From the NCBI GenBank assembly GCA_964252035.1, contig OZ176212.1: DNA of 64,000 bases; one strand, given 5' to 3'. This document shows positions 2,180-60,469 of the stretch, piece by piece. The position numbers and the translations under genes are program-made. This stretch comes from Podarcis erhardii (taxonomy: Eukaryota). Below the pieces are notes generated by a model that searched no databases, was not told the DNA's origin, and saw only the letters and a program-made list of their open reading frames with translations. Position 1 is the first letter of the stretch. Each line of letters opens with the position of its first letter.

Positions 2180-15350
<13,171 letters not shown>

Positions 15351-18300
15351 GGTGTCACCTGTAGAGGAAAAAGGAGTCATAGGTCAAGGTGTACAGCCAA
15401 AAGCATCAAATAAATAACATCATATGGATGAAACCCCACTTCCTGGCTTCTGTCTCTTTGTCACATTTGAGTGTGACCAAGAACAGCAATCAGGGTGGGA
15501 CATGCTCAGTTCTCAGTATCTGTCAGGGAACTTTATGGAACAGGCTGCAACTATGACATAGGCTGTGTACATACTGTACATACCATACATTTAAAGCGCA
15601 TTCCCCCAAGAATCTTGGGAACTGTAATTGGTTAAGGGTGCTGAGAACTGTAGCACTGTGAGGGGTAAACTACACTTCCCAGAATTCTTGGGGTGGGTGG
15701 GCTTTAAATGTATGGTGCATATGCAACCATAGTTGGGGAAGATCCTTAGACTATGGATCCCACTGACTGAAATATGATCCTTTCCACTGGTGATTCTGAG
15801 GATTGAGGCACTGAGGCAGCTGGGAAATATTAGACCCTGGACTTAATACCCTGCTTTAGACAGCCATCTGCGTTACTTCATTTGCAAAGCACTCAATTAA
15901 CACCACCATCCCATGCTTTATGACTGCTTATGTATTACTGATAAGCAGTTTGCCCACCTTGTTTTTTTTTTACTCTGTGCATGTGCAGTTTCACATTTTA
16001 AATCACAGCAGCATCATAACTACAGGAATAAAATGGAGTTTGCACCTGCTGCCCTGAGGCTAGGCACATTTACTTGGGAATTTCTAAACTGCACCCTGCT
16101 TCCTTCACTTCCTTCAGGTATAAAACAAGGTGGAAGTACCAGCAATAAGGAAAACTATTGTGAATGGAACATAATCCTTTCCCTGAGGAGGACAGCTACA
16201 CCCATTTTTGCCAAGGGCAGGTGTGGTTAACCTGTGACCCCACAATGTTTTGGGAATCCCAACTTCCATCAACTCCAGCCAACATGGACAATGATCAGGG
16301 ATGGTGGGAGTTGCAGTCCCAGAAACATCTGCAGGGGCCACAGGTTCCCCACTCTTTACCTCGGTCAATGATACACCTTAGGACTTGTAGCCAGGATGTG
16401 GCCAGTGGGGTGCAGTACCTCACTTGAAGAGGGTTCTGTGAATCATATTTATGGGTCTGGACAATTTTTATTCCAAGAGAAGTCAGTTTTTATTCACCCT
16501 ATTGCTTCAAGCTGTGCAGTATTAGTACCTGTAATAGAAGAGCATAGCATAAGCGCCGCGTGCAGCAGGTCCCAGGTTCAATCTCCAGGTAAAAAGAACA
16601 GGTGGCAGGAAAAGGCCACTATCTGTGATCCTGGGCAGCCAGTGGCCTGACTCAGTATAAGGCAGCTTCATGTGATGTGTTAAAAACACATTTAAATCAG
16701 CAGCAGATGGTGCCACCACCTCCACCCTGCCAGTGGTAATAGTCCAAATTCCACCCACATGACCTGCCCACCTATGATTCCCTGTCCTGACTCAGGATGT
16801 GTTATTCCAGAAGATCACAACCATCATTTCCAAGCTTTTGCCATTGGGAGGGGGGTGGAGATTCCCTTTAGCTATTATGACTGTGCTCGTGGCAGGGGAT
16901 ATGGGATCCCTTAAGGAAATTACTATTAAGGAAAGCACAGCGTTCATCATAAAGGCTTTGGGACGTAAACATTACCCTCCCCCTTCTTTTTTGCAGCTAA
17001 GCTAATGCTAAGAATTTGATGAGGTTAAGAATCAGGCAAACTCTACAGCTTGGCACGGGGATTGTAGAAGTTCACGTTGCTTAGGAAGGAATTACTGATT
17101 GATTTTCCATTCATGTCTTTGAGGCCCCTTCCAAGAAATGTGGCAGCCCCACCTAGCGGGGAAGGGTGACTACAGCCTTGCCTTAAATAAGAACGGCTGA
17201 TTTGGTTTCTTCCAAAACCAAACTAGTTCTAATCCAAGCAATGAAAATCACATACATGGCCACAACAAAAAACAACTCCTCAGTCTTCTGTAACCCCTTT
17301 TCAGCATCATCCCTCCACAAGAATTTGCCCGTTAAATACCGGTATATTAGCATCCTAATCCCAGTATTTGTGTATAGGCATAGCAGAGCACCTCCAGCTT
17401 CTGCCTTTCTGAGCAGTACTGAGTTGCTGAATTAGCATGTATCAAATAGGAAATTAACAATGCAGTGAACTTAAGTCATGGCCAGCACACTGCCCTCTTC
17501 CCACTTTGTTGCTCACAGGGCAGATGAGCCTACAGCAAAGCACAGGACTGTCGGCTGACCTCCATCTTTCGGGTGTGTGCACACAATATGTTATTCAAGA
17601 ATCACAGTATTTTTTTCTAGAATCAGTGGGAAACAAGTACTTGTTTTTTTCTGCACAGTAAATGCACAGTCAAGATCTATTGTGGGGGGTTTTGTTTTGG
17701 TCCTGAAAAGTAGCACTTTTTGAGGAACCAGCTTCATTCTGAAAACAAATGCTCACTGCAGCTTGATTCTGCATTGCCCTGCAGGGTGTCCATATGAAAA
17801 CAGATGTAAGTGGTCCTGGCCATAAGACCCAATGATGTTGTGGGTGGAATTATACAGAGATTGCATCCACCACATCCTTCACCATTCGCCTGAGGCATGT
17901 GCAGGGAGGAAAAGGCATGGATAACCTAATCAAGAAAAGGAATTTCAAATGTGGGTCAAGCAAGCAGACTCACCCTTGTAGACAACAAGTTCTAGAATCA
18001 ATCTAGACTGAAAGCAGCATGTTGAGGATGAGCATGCATGATTCAGGATAGTTTGTTGTTGTTTTTAAAGACGTTTTCTTGCTTCAGATGGGTTACTGTG
18101 TATGCAGCCTTAATGGGCGAATCTGCACTTATACATACATAAATATACACTTATACATATAGAGCATGTTCAAATCTGATGCAAATTTGTGTAATTTGCC
18201 TGTGCCAAGTCTTTTAAGTGCCATCTATTCCGGGGGGGGGGGGGGAGAGAAGAAACAGACCTTCTTGACTTATTGGTAGAGGGGAGGAAGCTGTTTGCAC

Positions 18301-47276: not shown

Positions 47277-48645
47277 TAATTAGGCTCCAACCCCTCCTGC
47301 ACCACCAGCACTTTAAAAACTTGGTAGGCCAGGAGGAGAAAGCTAAACCCTGAAAAATCTCAGTGCTGCAAACCCTAACAAACCCTACAGCAATAGGGTC
47401 AGTTATTTTGGTATTATTCTGGCAAATCAGTTGGAGTGTATGATGATGATGATGCCAGAAAATATTTCAATCTGTGTTCATTTAATTTTATAAACAAACA
47501 TACATAATGGAGCAATAGCAAAATATAGGTCAATTAACAACAGAGTTGGTGCAAGGCCAAAAACCTAATACAAAACCACCATTGGAAACGGAGCAACTGA
47601 ACAAAGGAGAAATGCAGCCCCATGGAAGGAATACCATTATCCAAGTTCAGTTACCATGAGTTTGAGCTGGGATAACATTGTTTTCTCTTTTTATTTACAG
47701 CAATTCCACATTTCTCTAAATTTGTCAGGCCCCTTTGTTTTCCTTAATGCTTTCATCTTGTGTGTTATTTTTTCTTCTGAAGCGATTGACCACGTTTCTG
47801 GATACCAAACTTCCAATGAATTCAGCCTTTTGCTGCTTTCGCAGTGGTTGGCTGTAAGATTACCAAGTCTTTCAGCATAACTTTCCCCTTTGAGTCATCA
47901 AACGTATATTTTCGTTATGGTACTACAGGGACACTTGTTATTTTCACTACAACCGACTAACTTGGCTACCACTCAGGAGTTCAAAAGGGCTGCAAATATT
48001 TGCACATCAAAAAGAGGCTGCAGCTGCCTGCAAACTGAGGTTGCTGCTTTCTCCTCTCCCACCCCAATAGATGGCCTTTCCTGGTCAGTGCCCTTCCAAC
48101 TTCCGGCCTACGTTCAGGAGAAGCCTTTGCCCCGTTGCACCAGTTGCGGCTCTCCGATAGTGAAAAGGCTGAAAACTGACAGGCAGAGATCAGAGACAAG
48201 ACATGGGAGCTTTGGGGTTCTCCAGCATCATCATCACCCTCCTTTTCCTGGGAGCAGCAGGTCAGTTCCAGCTATCCAGGACTTAGGGCTGTCTCTACCA
48301 TTAGGTAGAGCCAGGCGACTGCCTCAGGCAACAGAATGTTGGGGGCCGGGAATGGCAGCAAGGTGTGGAAGGGCAGAGCTGTGTGTGCCACATCCTACGA
48401 CCTGCTCTAGGTTGTCCTCAGTTAATGGGGTGTGGTGGAAGACAGTGTCCTATGGCCAGCACAGAAGTAACGCTCAACAGCCATTTTGGTTGTGGAAAAT
48501 CTTGTCCTTTGCCCCAGGCAGAAAAAGTCTTGTTCAGGCCTTGGTCACTCCTTGCTGGCAATAACCTCTTTTTTGGTTGGCTGTTTCTGATAAATCCTGT
48601 CCCTTAGGATTGCCATATTTCAAAAAGTAAAAACCAGGACACCCT

Positions 48646-49603: not shown

Positions 49604-52600
49604 ATGTCTCTATCTCACACACATGGTCCCCATTTTCTCTTGATTGTCTTGGTATTGGCTCACCTCCTTTCCCCCTTTCTCACAGGGTCTGCTGGCGATA
49701 CTTTTGATCTCACAGATGCCTTGGCTGACCCAGAAACCCCCCAGAGCAACCAGCAATTAGGACGTGAGTAGGGACTGTGCAGAAGAATGTCAGTTGTTGT
49801 TGTTTCCTCGAAAGAGAAGATTTAGCTGCTTTAACAGCCATGGCCTTCTCCAACAAATAAACCTGGAAACTGTAGTTCCCCACCTTTTACTCAATAGACT
49901 CAAGATATTAACACCCTGGCCACTTTAAATTACTTTTGATAAACATCAGTTTCAGTTGGATACCTACTGGGGACCTTTGGATAGCATCTATCAATTTGTA
50001 TGTGTAAATTAAGATGGATGTAGTGGTGCTTATAGTATAGTTAATGTGAGCTGACAGTGGTGTTTTGTTTTCCCCTTTCCTCCCCCCCCCCCATTTCTAT
50101 CCCCCCTCCCCACTTTTTTATAAATTTGCAATAAACAGATAAAATAAATAAATACTATACCCTATGGAACTAGCAGAAATTGAAGAGGTCAAGGTTCTTC
50201 TAACATGGAGTATAACTCTCATGTAGCCGTGATTAAATGCATGGGACCTGTAAGAGGTGGGGGTGGGAAAGAAAGGTGGCAACTTTATGCAGAAAATTAA
50301 ACTGCCGCTGAGTTGAGGAGTATTCGGAATGAAAAGGAATGTTTTTGACTTGGGATGAGTTTTTCTGGCTTGCTTTCGCCCTATCCAGAGTGTCAGAATG
50401 AGGCCCGGGACATTGTCTTCCTGATGGATGGTTCATCCAGCATGCGGGCATCAGAATTCCTGCAACTGAAGCTGTTCATTGCACTCGTAATGAAAAGTAT
50501 TCCCCATAATGTGCAGGTCAGTAGGGGAGATGGGCAAGAGGGCATGGTGTCAGCTCCCAGAGTTGGTTTAAATGTTGGAAGATTCAAGACAAACACTAGG
50601 ATTCTTGCAATTTTCATGTGCCTTGCTGCCGGGCACATACCACTGGGGTAAAAGAGTAGGATTTTGTGGGGGAAAGAGCAGGCTGCACTGAACCTCAGCA
50701 TGACCCCTTGTTCCTGATCAATTGAGTGGGGTTTGGCTGAGAAGCACAAGGGCTCAATGCCTCCAAGTCCCTTGGGAAGCCATGGCTCTGACCTTGCACA
50801 CTTCACTCCACCTGGGGGGTGTAGGAGTTAATAACAAAGGATGTGGTGGCTGCGTTATTGGATACTTTGGGGTTACTGTTCAAGGGCAGCAAATTGTCAA
50901 ATATTTAGTTAATTATTATACACATATCACCATAAGGGGTTCCTATTTGGGTTTTCGGCCTGAGGCAGCAAAACGCCTGTCTCTATTTAACACGAACAGT
51001 AACCAGACCTGAACTGGGGGAAACGATGAATGTAATCCAAAATGGGAAGAAGGCAGCTGGGTAGCCACTGGCCCCCAAACAGATTGATCGTGGCAGCTGT
51101 TAGCTGATTTAAGAATCAGGCTGCTCCTCCTGTCTGGCACACCTGCTTAAATACAAATATCACAGAGGTTAAGAAGAGCCCTGCCTGGTCAGGCTAATTT
51201 CTTGCATTCAGAGGCATACTGCCTCCGACAGTGGACAGTAGAGCATAGCCATTGTGGTTAGTAGCCGTGTCCTCATTAATCTCTCTCTGTTCTCAGTTTG
51301 CCCTCCTGCAGTTCTCTAACCGCTTTGAAGAGCATTTTGACTTCAGACGCTTCAGCAGAGACCGGGATGCCGACCTCTTGATCAGTGGAATCAAACAGCT
51401 GGGAGGCGGCTCCCATACGGCCTCCGGGATCAGAAAAGTGGTGTGGGTATCTTTGCTCCCGTTCTCTCCCCCGCCTCCTCTTTTTTCCCCCTGCTGGTGC
51501 AGAAATTCAAACAGTGCTTTTCCTACCATGGAGATGCAGCAATAGTGAAACGCAGAATGCTGTTACTTGCCACACTCACCGCCAGCCTTTCTCTCTCCTC
51601 CCGCTTTTAGGAAAGAGCTGTTCACCACACAAAAAGGAGCTCGCCCCACAGCCAAGAAGTTCCTTGTGATAGTGACAGACGGGGAGAAAACAGGGGACCC
51701 TCTGGAGTATGCAGATATTGTTGAAGAGGCCAACAGAGCTGGAATCACACGCATTGCGGTTGGGGTGAGAGCAAACATACCTGCCTATGTTACTTATTTA
51801 AGTTGCATGTTTCAAGGGCCAACCCTTCAGCTAAATTGGAACTCTGGGGGGCAGCTTACAGTGACAGTACAAAAGCAACAAAACCTCAGGCTGGTGTACA
51901 AAACTAAAACCAGCAGCAGACTAAATGGGCAACTAGAGCAGATCAGCAACCATTAATACTAAAAGCTGCATGTTCCCCACCTCTTGCTTTACCTCATCTG
52001 TAAAATGGGAATAACTGTGGACCTAATGCCGTGCGCCTTCTGGGGTAGTTTGTCCACCTTTGGTCCCCAACCTGCATTCAGCTCTCACCTGTGGCTCCTA
52101 GAAGCTGTCAGCATGAGGCAGCAGCCACACCCTGGGAAATGGCTTTGACTGGCCAGATATCTCTGGGAGAAGAAAAGGCTAAGGAGTTAACCCTACACAA
52201 ATTCAGAGTGGAATCCCCAAGATGGTTAGATTTGCCTTGTACGCCTCCCTCCAGCAACTCCTGCAGCCAAGCTGGTGTCAAACGTATTGCTCTGCTTTCC
52301 TTTGGCCACGTCAGTGAGGCCAAGAGGGAGGCCTTGTTTTCTGGGCAGCCCAGGACCTCCAGACACACTGCCCAGGCTTGCGCCCCAGGGAGGTCACTTT
52401 GGTGCTGCTATTGCTGCAGTTTGACTCCATTGTTTCTCAAGGCAGATAGATGCCAGCAGGAATGGAGTAAAACATACCCCAAAACCATAAAGCATTTTTG
52501 CCAGATTTCAGAGTGATCAAGCTAACCTATCCACCCCTGTGTTGTATATGAGAAAAGGCTCATACATGGTCCTTGGAGGGAGTTGGGGCTTCACCTTCCT

Positions 52601-55090
52601 CCAGCACAGACCTCTCAAGGTGTGCCCTGGTTGCAGGTGTAGATTAATCATTAACTCACCCCAAACCCACAGAGCCTCTGTCTGGGAGAGACTGATACCC
52701 AACTAGTAGTTTTTGCAAACTGGGCAGGTCCCAATGGCCACCACAATTGTTTTCCAGGTGGCTTTGTGGTCGGCAGCACACCTATTACCTGAGTCCTCTG
52801 GGTGGCGGTTCCCCTCAGCTCTCTTCTCCCTGTTTACTTGAGGCTGTCCCCATTTTCTGAGACCTCTCTTTGGTATAAAAGAGCCCACGAGCTCCCCAGG
52901 CAGAAGGCCACAGGAAACACACTTTCTCTGGGGCCTTGTTTGTAAGCAGCCATCCCTGAACCCCAAAGGGCACCATGCAGTGAGCACACCACCCTTTTGG
53001 AAGTGCAGGGTCATATTTTGAACATGACAGCATACGGATAGACAATTATGGTTTTCTAGTGCATCTTTAAACAAAACCACAAACACTCTTTTAAGTCAGG
53101 AGAGTAAATGAATGTGGCAGATTAAATGACTACAGCACCCAGCAGGCATGGCAGAGCCTTCTGCAAGGGCCCAAGGAGGGAGCGGGACACAGGAAGTGAT
53201 GCACATTGGGGCATTACAACCACCTGCCTCTTTCCATCTATGGAAGGTTGGAGGTGATGCGTTCTGGGCCATGCTGTCCACTCCTTGCCGTGTCACTGAG
53301 GGAAAGACCTGAGCTTTGGTGAACCCCGCCGTTCCTCTCTTGTCTGCCTCACACCACATCCAAAGTACAGCACAAACTGCCTCTTGGTGACTTTTGTTTC
53401 TCCTGGAAGGTTGGCCTGGGATTCACGAGTACAACTGCCCAGCGTGAGCTCCATGCCATGGCCTCCCACCCGCCCACAGAGCATGTCATTGTCGTGAGAC
53501 ACTTCTCAGGCCTCCGGGAATCCCAGGCGGAGCTGAAAGATAAGATTTGCACCAGCCACGGTACAAGGATTAGGGGACTGGGGGGTGAGGGAAAGGGGAA
53601 GGGGGGAAGCAGCAACCTGTGAATTTGGGAGGGGGGCTGGAAAAGACCTTGTATATTCTGCATTACTGTGGATGTTGATATTTATTTTTTTAAAGTACAC
53701 AACGCCATGTAAATACTTTTGTGTTTCTACATTCCATAACAAATCTGTGGAACTCACTGCCACAAGATGAGGGTGAGGGCCACACTTAAGCACCTTTAAA
53801 ATGGAACTGAGTAAATGCAAAAAGGATTGAGGATGAATCGGTGCTAATCAGCTGTGGAAAATGTTGATTTTTTGATGTTTTGTGGTGTTTTTATATTTTA
53901 TCAGCAGCCGCTCAGAGTGGCTGGAGCAACCCAGTCAGATGGATGGCATATAAACAATAGAATTATTATTATAATAATAAATTATTATGGTAGCTAAACG
54001 GAGTCTCCATCAGCGGAGGCTGATCCTGGCTCTTAGTGGCTCTGGCTCCACTTAACTGTTGGCCTCTCTGCCTTCCGTTCTGCCAGTTCCAAGGGGTACC
54101 ACTCACCATCTCCATGTTGTATGGGTAAAACACCACCAGGAGGAGGTGTGGGGTTGTTAGAAGAGAGATTGCTTTCACATCCTGCTTGGAAGTTTGCTGG
54201 AGGCATGTGCTTGGCCACTGAGAGGAAAAAGGTGCTGGTCTAAATGGACCTTTGGCCTAATCTGCAATATGTGTGTTATAATCTGATCCTCACCAGATTT
54301 CTAACCATGCTAACCATGCAATGAAACCACATACAAAGGAGAGAAGGGGATATATCAAACAGCACAAACTTATAAGAGTGGTCGTTTTTTGTTTTTAAGC
54401 AGCCTTTCATAGCTGCTAATTATAATTATAGAATTAGAATTATACCCTACCCATCTGGCTGTGTTGCGCCAGCCACTCTGGGCGGATTCCAACACATATA
54501 AAAACATACTAAAACATCAAACTTTAAAAACTTTCCGATACAGCGCTGCCTTCAGATGTCTTCTAAAAGTTGTATGGTTATTTATCTCCTTGGCATCTGA
54601 TGGGAGGGCATTCCCATGTAAGAAAGGCAGAAATTCAGCCATATTGCGTCGCCTGCCCCAAGCAGGGATCGGGATTTTGAAAGCTGGTTACTTTTTGCTA
54701 TTGCTCCGCTGCTAAAAGACACTTCGGCCCTGACTTCTGAAGACAGTGGGTGAATCGGCCCTTAGTAGCCATATCTGGGATTGTGAGGCAGGGCTTCTGG
54801 GTTCAGTGGAGGTGGGACAGAAGAGGCTTCAACCCCAACGCTTCTGAATTTATGTATTAAGCACTAGAAGACGGCAGTCGACCAAGGATGCGGCAACAAC
54901 CACGTAATGGGAAATGGTGCTGTGTTTATCTCTAGGTGCAGCTGCTCCACGGCCTACGGTGGTGCCCCAGCCCTTGAACACCTGCTCAGATCCCCAGGTG
55001 CTGCAGAAACTGGAGCGAGTGCTGAGTGGCCTTGATCAGGTGAACACCAAACTGAATGCGCTGGCTGCCAAGCAGGGGAAATGTGGCTAG
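49604..55090 (+). CDS. Secreted stand-alone integrin alphaM/X/D-type I (vWA) domain protein with C-terminal Cys-flanked coiled coil, 297 aa
   Basis: Exons 49604-49763, 50389-50516, 51297-51442, 51611-51764, 53410-53560, 54936-55090; total 894 nt, phases consistent, Kozak CCACCATG. Signal peptide MSLSHTHGPHFLLIVLVLAHLLSPFLTGSAG. I-domain motifs DIVFLMDGSSSM, GGSHTASGIRKVVKELF, VTDGEKTGDPLEY, ELKDKIC. The terminal exon reads GAAAPRPTVVPQPLNTCSDPQVLQKLERVLSGLDQVNTKLNALAAKQGKCG* and is followed by AATAAA. The I-domain exons are near-certain; the first and last exon joins are inferred. Confidence 0.82.
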
Positions 55091-55258: not shown

Positions 55259-55264
55259 AATAAA
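55259..55264 (+). terminator. Polyadenylation signal of the I-domain gene
   Basis: AATAAA about 170 nt after TAG 55088-55090; a second copy lies near 55420. Confidence 0.6.
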
Positions 55265-58229
55265 GCCTGCTCACCAGTTGGGTCCCTGCTGTTTCTTACT
55301 TAAATTGACTCCACATCAGTGCCCAATAGGCTGCGAGAGCTCTTGTCATTTCTACTAGAGTAATTTATTAACTTACGAGCTGCCTTTTCCTTGCGTGTCA
55401 AGGCGATTTACAGGCCTGCAATAAAAGCAGCTAAAAACAGCTTTTCTTTAAAAAAATGTAATAATAACTGGAGATAGGTTTAAGAATGATACACAGTGAA
55501 TACCCAAGGAAGAGATCTTTTCATCCAGATGGAAAAGCTTGTTGAAACAAAAATTGTCTTCAATTGTTTCTGGAAAGATACCAGTGGGCGCCTGTCGTAT
55601 CTCAGCAGGAATGTAGCTGCACAGACTGCCCTGCTCTGAGTTCCTAGGAGAGAGCATCTGACATTTTGGAGACTTGAAGGGGTAACTCTGTTGCAGAGTG
55701 ATGTACGCGCTGCATATGTGTGTGTAGCTATTTAAAAGGCTGCCTTCTCAAATAAGACTGAGAGTTATTTTGATTTATATCCCACACCCAACCCAAAAGC
55801 TCAAAGTGAAAAATACAAAAGAAGCTCAGCAAAACAAAGATGCTGGCAATGCTTTCTCACAAGTAAGTCCCACCATGTTCAGTGGGGCTTACACCCAGGC
55901 AGAGGTGTACCTAGGGGGTTGCTGAAACCAGCCCCCACTGGGGGCGCACAAAAATCACCTGTTTCTAGTGTTGTGACACTGCTGTCACTGCAAGATCAAA
56001 CATGGGAGAATATCTTTCTCACATCGTGGTACAAAGGTGTGTGAATCTTTTCGCCCTTCCTCCTCACTTCTCCCTCCCTCTGGACGCTTTGAGTACTTGG
56101 CTTGCATAAAGTGTAAGTGATTCCTGATGTGGCTACCGCACTAAAGTGATTTCCCTCCCTAGGAGCGAGTGCCAATGCATCTCCTTGCCAAGGGTGTACA
56201 GAACCCTAGATATGCCTCTGCTTCTGGGTCGGTGTATATAGGAGGAAATGTTACATAGCTGGGGTATATCTTTCTCCCCATCTGTCTATTGACACTCAGG
56301 GCAAAAGTAGACATTAAATTGTTTGTTGGTTAAATTTATTAGTCACTTGTCGCTTGAAGGTCCCCAAGCAACTTACAAGAAAGAAAAATATATACTAATA
56401 CATAATACCATGGTGGGAAAGGGGGATAATATAATACATTATTATTTTGTATAAAATACTGTAACACTAATGGAAAAACAAAAACAACACACCAGCTGTA
56501 TAAATAGTAAGAAACAACATTAAAAGTGTTCAAGTAGTAATCAAAGCAATACTCCCACCCAATAATTAGCTAATAAAATCTCAGACCATAGCAATTACCC
56601 TGTTTTTGTGCAGTTTTTGGACAAATTTTCAGCACAGGATCCTGATCTAGATCTTGGGGAGCTTTAAAATGTCTCTGGTCCTAACCTGGATCCTAACCTC
56701 CATGCTGGCAAATGTGCGTAAAAAGACTCTGCATTTGAAAGACACAGCTACACATCACTGTTGTGTAGTTCAGAATGTCATTCGAGGAAATGAAACTGGC
56801 AGGAGAATCTGGACAGGCATGAAAGAACCACTTCATACATCACCCAGTTCATTTCTCAAGTTCACGGCCGCCATAATGTGGTGACGGCCACTAATTTATA
56901 TATCTTTAAAAGGCAGATTAGTAAATTTAGTAGAGAATAAGGCTATCCCTTGCTGCTATTCATGAGGGCTACATACTACCTCCAATGTTTGCATTGAGGT
57001 TTTCCCACAACTGCTTTGAGATTTATTTATTTTTACAATCAAGTGGTATATAACTTGTATGGGATGAATGGTATCAGAAGGAACATGCCCATGATTACTG
57101 GGGAAGATGAGGAGGAGAGTGCCCTTGCCTTCATGTCCTGCTGGAACAGGAGGCTCAGAGGGTCTGCGGTCTGATCCAATCCAAGCACATTCATTCCTAA
57201 ATAACGACGATACAGCTTTTGAGCATGGACAGAGTGACACTTTCCCATTGAGGAAGCATAGGCTGTGCGCACACACCCCTCTACACTTGCACTGCTGGTT
57301 TGGGAAGTAGTGTACACACAGTCGCATCTATCCTGTAGTTTCTTGTGAAATACTGTTTTGATGCATTCCCTAGCAAACCAGCTTTGAGTCAAATGGAGAA
57401 AAAGAGCAATCCAGCTTTCTTTTAAGCTAGTAATGCGATTGCAGTGACAGGCAACCTCACTTTCTATCCAAATCTGCAAGCAGGGTTGAAACTCCACATT
57501 TTACCTAACGAGGCTGAATGGTTTCCCACCAGTTTTTTCTTTATACACTTAGATCCCCATTTGCTCCAGATAGGGAAAGGCTGTAGCCCAGTGATACAGC
57601 ACATGCTTCACATGCAAAAGATGCATCTCTTAAACCCTGAAGAGCAGCTGCCAATCGGCTTACACAGCAGCATGCTAGGTGGACCCAGAGGTCTGGTTTG
57701 GGACAAGACAGATCCCTATTCCGCTGATGCTGCATTCTGAATAAGCTGCTGGGCTTAGAACCCAAATACAACTCCTAAGCCAGCATGGTGCAGTGGTTGG
57801 ACTAGAACCTTGGGAGACCAGGGTTCGAATCCCCACCCAGCCATGAAGCTCACTGGGTCTTCCTGAGGATGATATGGGGAGGTGGTGTGTACTACACCAG
57901 CACCTTAAGCTTCTTGGAGGAGAGGTGGGATATAAATGCAACAAACGATGCCCACCCATGCTCCCTGCTGCCTGCACGAAAGGTACAATACCTAAATCTT
58001 TGTTTTGCCAGACGTAGTATCATAGAATCTTAAAGAGTTGGAAGTCAAAATTTATGTCTGTATGTTTAGTTTGTATGTTTAGTTTGTACAGTATGTTTTT
58101 TTTTGTAATCTAAGTTTAGAGGTGTATGTATCTATGTATAATATGTTTGTTTAGTGTTCTGGTTTGTGTTTGTAAGTATTGCATTTATTAATAAAATATA
58201 TAGAGAGAGAGTAGGAAGGTAGCCTCCCT

Positions 58230-59050
58230 GCCTATCCGGCCCAGGAGCCGGGCAGAGTCCCAAGCTGGCGCGCTCCTCCTACTCCTTCCCCGCCCCTTAA
58301 AACTGGCTTTTCTTTTAATGATAACTGCGGAGGGGCGTGGAGGAGGCAGCAAGCAAAAGCCGAGAGGGCAGGCGGACTTGGCGCGGGAAGCTACACCCAC
58401 TTTCCCCCAGCGCCGGCTTCTCCCTTTCCTGTTGTTCCCGCAGCGAGCCTCTTCCCCCCGTCTGATCCAGGCGGGGGAGGAGCAGGGGCAGGAGCAGGAG
58501 CGGCCAGCCAGAGAGCGCGCTAGCTTGGGACTCTGCCCGGCTCCTGGGCCGGATAGGCAGGGAGGGATGCGAGACTCTTCCGGGGGAGGCGGAGCCCGGC
58601 CGCCTTCCTGCTTCCTGCCCCGCGTCTCTCTCGGCTGCTGCCTGGGCTGGGAGAAAGGCGACTTCTCCGAAAGAAGGAAGCGCCAAGAGACCCACACGCT
58701 CCTGCTGCGCACAGGCGGGGGGATCCTCCGGAGCCGAGCCGGATCCGCGTCCAGCTTCCAAAATAAAGCCTCCGGTCTGCAGGGAACCCCAAAAGGTAAG
58801 TAGAAAAAGAGGGGGCGCAGGGGTCAGGATCCCCTCCAACTCTCCGTCCCGCCCTCCCTCCGGCACCCCCAGCCACCCAAGCAGGAGTCCGACGGCGGAA
58901 GCACCCTGCTGCACCACCCTCGCCGCCCTGCCAAAGGGGCGCAGCAGAAGCTTCAGCCCGGGCAGATCTCGGCACCCGCGACGCTGCATTCCCGAGGTCC
59001 CAGCACCCCGAGGGGAGGGAGAAGGGCTCGCTCACCCTCCACAACCCGCA
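58230..59050 (+). promoter_or_regulatory. CpG island / promoter and first exon of RABEP2
   Basis: Dense CpG and GC boxes; strong donor AAAG|GTAAGT at 58796/58797. Confidence 0.75.
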
Positions 59051-60469
59051 GCAGCAGAGCCAGGAGAGAGAGAGAGAGGCACAGACCCGATGGGCTTCCC
59101 TAATACGACGCACCTGCTAGGATCTCTTGGGTCAGGGAGCCGGGGGTGGGAGAGAGAGAGAGCCACCCCAGGGCCCCCCCCCCAAAAAGCTGCTAGGAAA
59201 GGTCCTAGGAAAGCTGCAGATTAGAAGGTGCTCTGAGGCACAGGGGGTCCCAGACACAGCTAAGGGGGAGAATTTTGTGGGGCCCCCCCCAAGTCCCACA
59301 CTACCTCAAGGATCTCCTCAGAAAAGAAGGGGAGACAGCGGTGAAGCCCAGGTCTCTGCTGCTGAGAGTGGATGTATCGCCCACAAGGTGATTTCAGCAG
59401 GGGCTTGGCCACCCCCCCAAGCTGGACTCACCTGTGGGAAGCAGGCTTTACCTCAGAGGTTAATCTTTCTTTGGAGGGCAAGGACTGGCTGACGGACCAG
59501 CATGACAGAATAGCAGGGCCTTCTAGAGAAAAAACTCTTCTGCCTGGCAACAGCAGTCGTTGGGCTTACATGAAGTCTGCACCCAACAGGACCCTCAGGC
59601 TACCAACATTCTTGGGTGGGTGGGGGCAGCTTGCAAGCTTCTCAAGGGCCTGGGCGTCCTCTTATCTCAGGCCACTGGATTCTGGACACAGTTCAGAGCA
59701 GATAAGTGAGTTCCACAAGGCACCCAGGGGCATCTTCCCAGTTCCAGTCTCCCAAGGAGCCCTCCAGCATCTCCTTACAATCCAGGCCATCAAACACATC
59801 CCAGTCCCTGAGAGGGCGGGGTCTTCCCAGCCTTCTTCAGGGTCCCAAGACAGACTGGAGACACATGGTCCATCCTGAGAGTGAATCTCCCAAGTTCCAC
59901 GTGGAGATTTTGCGCAGCATCCTGGCAAGCTTCAGGAAGGGTTACTTCTTCACCTCTATCAACCTGACACAACCATACCTCTACACTTTCATCAGGCAGG
60001 ACCATTGCAGGTTCCTATGGCAACGACTAGGTCCAGTTCCAGGCTCTGCCTTTTGGTAGCACACATAAGATGCTCTCAGGGGAGTCAGGACCAGAGCCCA
60101 CAGACAGTGCACCACACTCTTTTGGTCCTTCAAACCCTCCTGACTTGTCAAGAAGTTCTCAAAGGGCTCTCTGGCTAAGAAGATGCATTTCCCTAGCTTA
60201 CACATCAGCCAATCTCCATTTCCCAGAGGCCTCAGTTGCACACTCAGTGAGGCAGGGGGCCATAGCCTCCAGAGCTTCCTGGGAGATGGGACCTCTAGAG
60301 GAGATCTGTAGGGTAGCTATCTCCTCGGTCCATCGCTACCAGATCAACACCTTTGCATCAGAAGGCACCCTTGGGTAATGTGTCCTGCAAGAGAGTTCAG
60401 CACTCCTAGGGAGACACAGTGCAGGATGTTGGAGAACAGGGACCCACCCAGAGATGCATTGATTTTCAG

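Follow-up and report, generated by a model that had tools for sequence, protein, structure and literature searches.

A squamate gene that joins an integrin alphaM/X/D-type I domain to its own signal-like N-terminus and a predicted coiled-coil tail

To our knowledge, integrin I domains are known only as inserts of membrane receptors, in which the beta subunit sets their affinity allosterically. Two kinds of extracellular protein offer the nearest comparison in layout: the matrilins, which are secreted and whose coiled coil makes disulfide-linked trimers or tetramers, and WARP (VWA1), which has one VWA domain and multimerises through C-terminal Cys residues. Here we analyse a window of 64,000 nt from Podarcis erhardii (assembly GCA_964252035.1, contig OZ176212.1), in which a plus-strand gene, lying between an ACP4-like gene and RABEP2, encodes an I domain of the alphaM/X/D type preceded by a signal-like segment and followed by a Cys-flanked helix. 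As judged from its sequence, the product is probably a naturally secreted and oligomeric integrin I domain. The original prediction for this locus had proposed that a block of integrin I-domain exons became a small stand-alone gene with a signal peptide, a coiled-coil tail and no propeller, stalk or membrane anchor, and this core proposal holds because sequence, exon structure, synteny, spliced mRNA contigs and purifying selection all speak for it.

At the domain level, the protein is a member of the alphaM/X/D I-domain group in fold, sequence, metal site and exon structure. Whole-receptor membership among the integrin alpha subunits fails, as the protein has no propeller, no stalk or membrane span and no docking Glu. 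Compared with the I domains of alphaM (CD11b, CR3) and alphaX (CD11c, CR4), it shares the fold, the metal site, the alpha7 Ile, the N-terminal Cys and the exon boundaries; in contrast, it lacks the propeller insertion, the thigh/calf region, the membrane span and the cytoplasmic tail, it has replaced E320, carries Cys for F317 and mostly Ser for T209, and it brings its own signal peptide, N-terminal linker and predicted coiled-coil tail. With matrilin-3 and matrilin-1/CMP it has in common a VWA domain followed by Cys and a short, in this case predicted, C-terminal coiled coil, a likeness of architecture only, because no homology between its tail and the coiled coil of matrilins could be detected; unlike matrilins, it contains no EGF modules (no EGF match in Pfam), and its VWA domain descends from an integrin I domain, whose exon structure it shares. 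WARP likewise combines a signal peptide with one VWA domain, but has FN3 repeats and no coiled coil, and Pfam and PDB searches revealed no close sequence relation to it. Collectins and ficolins are a functional analogy, being secreted proteins in which low-affinity recognition domains are made multivalent by an oligomerising neck, although their recognition domain is C-type lectin or fibrinogen-like and the present protein has no collagen stalk. Finally, some teleost proteins (Sardina 'cartilage matrix protein-like' P0100, Alosa P0045 and the VWA+ZP protein P0111) are also non-integrin and have VWA domains near the I domains, whereas they are multi-VWA proteins with FN2 or ZP and without the squamate tail.

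Gene model, transcripts and conservation

We are highly confident that the locus is a genuine protein-coding gene found throughout Squamata and of the architecture given above, and that its correct model has seven coding exons and 289 aa, the numbering used below. Coding exon 1 (48203..48260, 58 nt, phase 1) opens with the ATG at 48203, encodes the conserved signal peptide MGALGFSSIIITLLFLGAAG and ends at the donor GT at 48261 (gacATGG...GCAGCAG^gtcagt, the caret marking the exon end); a 5' UTR extends upstream to at least ~48115, as shown by the alignment of a gecko-like mRNA contig (L008) over 48115-48260. Exon 2 (49686..49763, 78 nt) encodes the N-terminal linker of the mature protein, in which an FDLxDAL motif is conserved. 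The I domain starts in exon 3 (50389..50516, 128 nt), which carries Cys47 and the metal motif D59-x-S61-x-S63, continues through exon 4 (51297..51442, 146 nt), with Ser127 at the position of alphaM T209 and with Thr129, and exon 5 (51611..51764, 154 nt), with the metal-site Asp160 (alphaM D242), and ends in exon 6 (53410..53560, 151 nt) with helix alpha7, where Ile234 corresponds to alphaM I316, Cys235 stands in place of F317 and His238 in place of E320. Exon 7 (54936..55090, 155 nt with the TAG at 55088-55090) encodes the Pro-rich hinge, Cys255, the helix at 258-285 and Cys288. The polyadenylation signal that had been anticipated downstream of the terminal exon is the AATAAA at 55259..55264 in the 3' UTR, and an equivalent AATAAA lies near the end of contig L008. 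All of these features are on the plus strand.

The 5' end differs from that of the original prediction, which had six exons, began at an ATG at 49604 and placed the signal peptide and the linker in one exon (49604-49763) with a perfect Kozak context, giving 297 aa. Its six exons have canonical AG/GT borders and an open 297-aa frame to the TAG at 55088-55090, the frame is open from 49604 in a CACCATG context, and the resulting N-terminal extension is hydrophobic and also open in Podarcis muralis. However, only the part from 49686 is exonic. The stretch 49604..49685 is the 3' end of intron 1, with a pyrimidine tract, an AG at 49684-85 and no conserved coding sequence, and the acceptor at 49686 is used by every annotated isoform and in all seven species whose loci we compared. 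Ortholog N-termini follow the pattern MGxxxxFxxTLLFLGAxES, and tblastn with Zootoca and Podarcis orthologs places this peptide at 48203-48262 and finds none at 49604. The signal-peptide exon was recovered in 7/7 orthologous loci, all with a two-exon N-terminus. The extension read in frame upstream of 49686 stays open in Podarcis alone; in Eublepharis, Rhineura and Elgaria a stop interrupts it within 5-13 codons. Joining 48203-48260 to 49686 yields 289 aa, the same length as the annotated, near-identical P. muralis product (P0027). Given the conserved peptide upstream, the AG acceptor, the unconserved extension and the 5' end of mRNA contig L008, which aligns with the upstream exon, the former signal peptide is a translated intron end, with the ATG at 49604 inside intron 1 and the true signal peptide 1.4 kb upstream; the six-exon model is thus very improbable, and its first exon, start codon and protein length were wrong.

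A search of 5.8 billion proteins returned 21 matches, all squamate and almost all 282-308 aa long. The approximately 20 squamate orthologs span Gekkota, Scincoidea, Cordylidae, Lacertoidea including Rhineura, Iguania, Anguimorpha and snakes. The ACP4-like/RABEP2 slot is occupied by the gene in seven genomes, in the order His_Phos_2(-)/gene(+)/Rabaptin(+), so that syntenic orthologs exist in squamates, and the seven loci share a seven-exon plan of ~52-61/78-84/128/146/151-154/145-151/155-212 nt. Spliced transcripts are represented by two intron-less transcriptome contigs, one of 1162 nt from SRR6291277, with an 88-nt 5' UTR, a complete 298-aa CDS and a 3' UTR with AATAAA, and one of 961 nt from SRR6291286, which is 5'-truncated; in both, the exons are joined in frame to the tail and the stop. 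No paper on the gene was found under its pipeline names or in work on reptile I-domain evolution. Databases already list the gene, but with automatic names that mislead; as the original prediction had foreseen with the label 'integrin alpha-X-like', pipelines call it 'integrin alpha-M/X/D-like' or 'hypothetical'.

The name 'integrin alpha-M-like' is misleading because the gene product is no integrin subunit. When five species' full-length integrins were searched against the 64-kb window by tblastn, only the four I-domain exons were matched, bearing out the claim that exons for a propeller, thigh/calf or membrane span are missing here; Pfam likewise gave no FG-GAP match in the protein. The protein stops 54 residues after the I domain, at its own stop codon and with its own poly(A) signal, and the mRNA contigs end alike. 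Strong hydrophobicity is confined to one segment, at the N-terminus; beyond it, no 19-residue window exceeds 1.33 on the Kyte-Doolittle scale.

The same name could be taken as a sign that the locus is a decaying or non-functional duplicate, that is, a transcribed pseudogene, or else a mis-modelled fragment of a full-length integrin gene. Odd gene models, such as the one in Protobothrops that is fused to RABEP2 and those of Podarcis raffonei with long 5' isoforms, and metal sites that are degenerate in two species would also fit such a duplicate or fragment. Against this stand a frame that is intact in ~20 species across crown Squamata, an overall dN/dS of 0.32 (Nei-Gojobori, eight species), which agrees with the purifying selection expected of a functional gene, and pN below pS at high significance (Fisher p between 1e-8 and 1e-16 in deep pairs; p 0.015 between the two Podarcis sequences). 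Conservation extends to the added exons, the gene has a stop and poly(A) signal of its own and complete mRNA contigs, propeller and stalk exons are absent from the window, and the gene neighbours are fixed. We consider a pseudogene or integrin fragment extremely improbable. By region, dN/dS is 0.28 in the I domain, 0.30 in the tail, 0.46 in the signal peptide plus N-linker and 0.44 in the hinge.

Across the window, collinearity with the P. muralis locus (91-98% identity) places the neighbours where they had been expected, with the CDS 5' end of the ACP4-like His_Phos_2 gene (minus strand) at ~44.8 kb and the coding start of RABEP2 (plus strand) at ~62.2 kb. The GC-rich stretch 58000-60000 (GC 0.58), upstream of the first RABEP2 coding exon, is probably the CpG-island promoter of RABEP2. 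In Protobothrops mucrosquamatus, a 498-aa annotated protein (P0021) combines the first I-domain exons of this gene with RABEP2; read-through or a gene-model error is its probable source, and it is consistent with the conserved adjacency of the two genes. A 224-codon ORF at 47890-48564 (+) overlaps coding exon 1 in another frame, and its equivalent is translated in isoforms X1 and X2 of P. raffonei (P0025, 453 aa; P0031, 365 aa), where it is joined to SAGD...; this ORF probably results from alternative 5' models as an artefact and is no conserved coding region. Farther away, at 2180-15358 (-), ORF translations resemble a PACSIN/syndapin gene: they include F-BAR-like segments and, C-terminally, an SH3-like one.

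Descent and metal site of the I domain

The I domain is recognised by Pfam as VWA with an E-value of 2e-36 (residues 61-235 of the 297-aa model). Its best PDB matches are the I domains of alphaM (CD11b, 1e-48) and alphaX (CD11c, 5e-44), followed at a distance by alphaL (CD11a, 4e-27), alphaE (3e-23), alpha1 (2e-13) and single collagen VI VWA domains (~1e-8); chance cannot account for a similarity of this degree. Residues 47-238 are 45-50% identical to the CD11b and CD11c I domains over the whole domain. An AlphaFold model has pLDDT >90 over residues 50-240 and ~76-80 in the tail helix; its input comprised 40 sequences, and the pLDDT of 81 was obtained once 20 integrin I domains and 4 teleost I-like VWA domains had been added, whereas 18 family sequences alone gave 53. 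The top Foldseek matches of the model are all CD11b/c I domains, with TM scores of 0.92-0.96 (normalised to the target) and rmsd values of 0.9-1.0 A to closed forms.

Exon structure leads to the same relatives. In the integrin alphaD-like gene of a bird (Chamaea), the I-domain exons measure 131/146/154/151 nt (the last split 34+117), as against 128/146/154/151 nt here, and both genes place the boundaries at the same residues (...Q^F..., ...V^(K/L)E..., ...G^VG... and ...(E/H)^G, carets marking the boundaries). Because boundaries are shared and sizes match, the four exons appear to have been copied as a block. Sequence, fold and the bird exon plan thus agree with the claim that four exons of 128/146/154/151 nt encode an alphaM/X/D-type I domain. 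As to the bird gene itself, the Chamaea fasciata model (L009 11265-11360) splits the last I-domain exon by a 94-nt 'intron' into 34+117 nt, and its downstream part is a low-complexity translation; with this model the pipeline probably worked around an error in the assembly.

We compared diagnostic residues between 19 stand-alone sequences and 120 sauropsid integrin I domains. The alphaM numbering follows the human protein and was verified at the known sites D140/S142/S144/D242. The metal-site residues D59 (D140) and S61 (S142) are present in 18/19 and 19/19 stand-alone sequences, respectively, and in 120/120 integrins each; S63 (S144) is Ser in 18/19 with one Thr, against Ser in 120/120 integrins; and D160 (D242) is found in 17/19, against 112 Asp and 8 Glu. 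Residue 127 (T209) is Ser in 14 and Thr in 5 of the stand-alone proteins and Thr in 119/120 integrins. The MIDAS (metal-ion-dependent adhesion site) of the P. erhardii protein accordingly consists of D59, S61, S63, S127 (a conservative Ser at T209) and D160, and the site is kept in 17/19 orthologs. Of the MIDAS proposed by the original prediction, the D-x-S-x-S motif and the Asp stood, and the numbering and the Thr did not, the residue aligned with alphaM T209 being Ser127.

Around helix alpha7 the two groups part company. Ile occupies residue 234 (I316) in 19/19 stand-alone sequences and 117/120 integrins, while residue 235 (F317) is Cys in 19/19 as opposed to 0/120 integrins (F in 113, I in 7). 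The beta-docking Glu (E320) is absent from the stand-alone proteins, in which residue 238 is His, Arg or Gln in 19/19, compared with Glu in 114/120 integrins. At the other end of the domain, the N-terminal Cys47 is common to 19/19 and 118/120. Most orthologs have exactly four Cys, at 47, 235, 255 and 288; snakes have an extra Cys before the helix, forming CxxC.

In a tree of I domains rooted on two teleost I-like VWA proteins (P0100 and P0045, both of which fall outside the group of sauropsid integrins and stand-alone proteins), the 19 stand-alone sequences form one clade (support 95/93) whose internal branching follows squamate phylogeny. This clade has a long stem (0.36), and its sister group comprises every sauropsid integrin I domain in the sample (91/80). 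An approximately unbiased (AU) test does not reject a clade with squamate integrins (p 0.318). The tree contains no mammalian alphaM/X/D/L/E, and the relation to the named mammalian paralogs rests on the PDB E-values. These results support one origin, in the squamate ancestor at the latest; an earlier one is possible, the tree and the AU test together being compatible with a date before or after the sauropsid radiation. Proteins of this architecture from outside Squamata were sought by the search of 5.8 billion proteins and by profile and tail searches, and none was found, synteny outside Squamata not having been tested. In the profile search, no non-squamate protein with a single VWA domain plus tail reached 241 bits; the top 150 matches were dominated by multi-VWA proteins (collagen VI-like), and clustering at 50% could hide close relatives. 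As the probable origin, four alphaM/X/D-type I-domain exons would have been copied into the ACP4-RABEP2 interval, where they would have gained two 5' exons, for the signal peptide and the linker, and one 3' exon for the hinge and the Cys-flanked helix.

Two observations concern the I domains of other vertebrates. The 120 best matches to one Chelonoidis integrin are all from turtles (P0189-P0307), whose distinct alphaD/alphaX/alphaM-like integrin proteins are very numerous, with many per genome; this suggests a lineage-specific expansion of that integrin cluster. Furthermore, teleost non-integrin secreted proteins (P0100, P0045, P0111 and P0178) have VWA domains that score close to integrin I domains in architectures such as 2xVWA+FN2, multi-VWA and VWA+ZP, and may bear on I-domain ancestry.

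Added segments and the predicted oligomer

The I domain carries added segments on both sides. Residues 1-20 form a hydrophobic, signal-like segment, and residues 21-46 a linker with the FDLxDAL motif (in the region of residues 24-32), in which F26 and A31 are invariant and D27, L28 and D30 nearly so; the linker has no significant similarity to the integrin segment that precedes the I domain, to a whole integrin or to RABEP2. On the C-terminal side, a Pro-rich hinge of ~17 residues (239-256), predicted to be disordered, leads to a predicted amphipathic helix of 3.5 heptads at 258-285. Over 18 species, its a positions (264, 271 and 278) are hydrophobic, with Leu throughout except for one Val at 278, and its d positions (260, 267, 274 and 281) are Val, Ile, Leu or Met. 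The e positions 261 and 268 are hydrophobic too, several b, c and g positions are invariant and charged (K263, E265, D272 and K277), and each of the helix-flanking Cys is present in 17/18 species. In model coiled coils, Leu at a, beta-branched residues at d and a wide hydrophobic face are associated with tetramers or higher states (Harbury-type rules), and the heptad pattern of this tail may be read as a hint of a tetramer or higher state.

Sequence searches found no relative of this tail outside the family. A database search with the tail only (residues 236-289) matched solely the same squamate family, and Pfam assigned no family to eight isolated tails. By Smith-Waterman comparison against shuffled sequences, the tail shows no significant match to the post-I-domain integrin segment, to a whole integrin or to RABEP2 (z <=3.8 once, mostly <2). 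Matrilin_ccoil (PF10393) was matched neither by the whole protein (E up to 1) nor by the eight isolated tails (E up to 10). Thus, of the convergence on matrilins that had been proposed, the likeness in architecture stands and homology of the coiled coils does not. In a language-model feature search with the tail, matrilin clusters came first with low scores of 0.44-0.49, which is a lead only.

From these segments, a mechanism can be proposed. The protein would be secreted by means of its N-terminal signal-like segment. Cys47 and Cys235 could form a clasp that closes the domain at both ends, in the manner of classical VWA domains; the N-terminal Cys of an integrin I domain presumably has its partner elsewhere in the alpha subunit. 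The tail would assemble as a parallel coiled coil that Cys255 and Cys288 lock covalently, and a tail locked in this way would make a trimer, a tetramer or a higher oligomer of I domains. Disulfide-linked oligomerisation of this kind is, in our estimation, moderately probable. Through Mg2+, the oligomer might bind acidic-residue ligands of the CR3/CR4 type, such as iC3b/C3d, fibrinogen and denatured or microbial surfaces, with avidity standing in for the allosteric (inside-out) activation that the beta2 subunit provides in integrins.

Candidate functions and their meaning for squamates

Taken as a whole, a secreted, oligomeric I-domain protein that binds CR3/CR4-type ligands is the best explanation of the gene, and we regard it as likely. 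Several findings weigh against it. The overall dN/dS shows merely moderate constraint. The predicted model lies nearer to closed, low-affinity CD11b (rmsd ~1.0) than to open or ligand-bound forms (2.5-2.9 A), although the conformational state of a predicted model is not counted as reliable evidence. The position of alphaM T209 is Ser in 14/19 species. Hemicordylus capensis (P0012) has lost the metal site at three positions (D59H, T129M and D160A) and also lacks the terminal Cys, and Crotalus adamanteus (P0019) shows the metal-site losses T129M and D160G, so that metal-dependent binding is not indispensable everywhere; these losses may reflect a lineage-specific relaxation or a metal-independent function. 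Finally, the tail fits no known coiled-coil family. Even so, a beta2-independent, disulfide-linked and multivalent metal-dependent binder is the most likely reading of the sequence. That its ligands form an immune or opsonin-type set is a tentative proposal, and sequence cannot decide among opsonisation, decoy inhibition and matrix cross-linking.

The most specific form of the immune proposal is a humoral CR3/4, in which a secreted, covalent oligomer of CD11b/c-type I domains, no longer under beta2 control and held in one affinity state by Cys47-Cys235, would circulate and bind by avidity to surfaces coated with iC3b/C3d or fibrin(ogen) and to microbial surfaces; we consider it possible, though on the doubtful side. 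A matrix adaptor like the matrilins or WARP, whose VWA domain cross-links collagens and proteoglycans while the tail oligomerises and which has no immune role, has in its favour that a signal peptide, one VWA domain, Cys and a C-terminal coiled coil are the minimal matrilin layout, that the feature search listed matrilin clusters first, if only as a lead, and that a structural protein would more easily tolerate the loss of the metal site in two lineages. The domain itself, however, is close to CD11b/c and far from collagen-type VWA domains such as those of collagen VI, CD11b/c-type I domains are promiscuous receptors of immune ligands, and neither EGF modules nor a Matrilin_ccoil match accompany it, which makes such an adaptor unlikely.

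Alternatively, a soluble decoy or antagonist would compete with cell-surface CR3/CR4 for iC3b, fibrinogen and ICAM, thereby dampening leukocyte adhesion or complement-driven phagocytosis instead of furthering uptake. The ligand-binding face is the same as in CD11b/c and is not accompanied by any known module that recruits effector cells, and in mammals recombinant I domains act as competitive inhibitors. A decoy would not need covalent multimerisation, however, yet constraint on the tail, its Cys included, is as strong as on the I domain, and we give this role little credence. The preferred reading, a secreted and oligomeric binder of CR3/CR4-type ligands, can be directly tested, and the gene is of interest mainly because it is conserved, cleanly interpretable and open to such tests.

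The gene can be viewed as a natural experiment, stable across crown Squamata, in which an I domain was freed from its receptor and given a secretion signal and a tail, and in which the residue that couples it to beta2 is gone. It is also a clean and datable case of a new gene formed by exon-block duplication and terminal-exon capture, and its product would be a naturally soluble, multivalent I-domain scaffold that may be compared with engineered I domains. The humoral CR3/4 proposed above, if true, would represent a class of soluble pattern-recognition or complement-fragment binders not described in any vertebrate. If the protein binds CR3/CR4 ligands, it would add a humoral arm to innate immunity or complement handling in reptiles.

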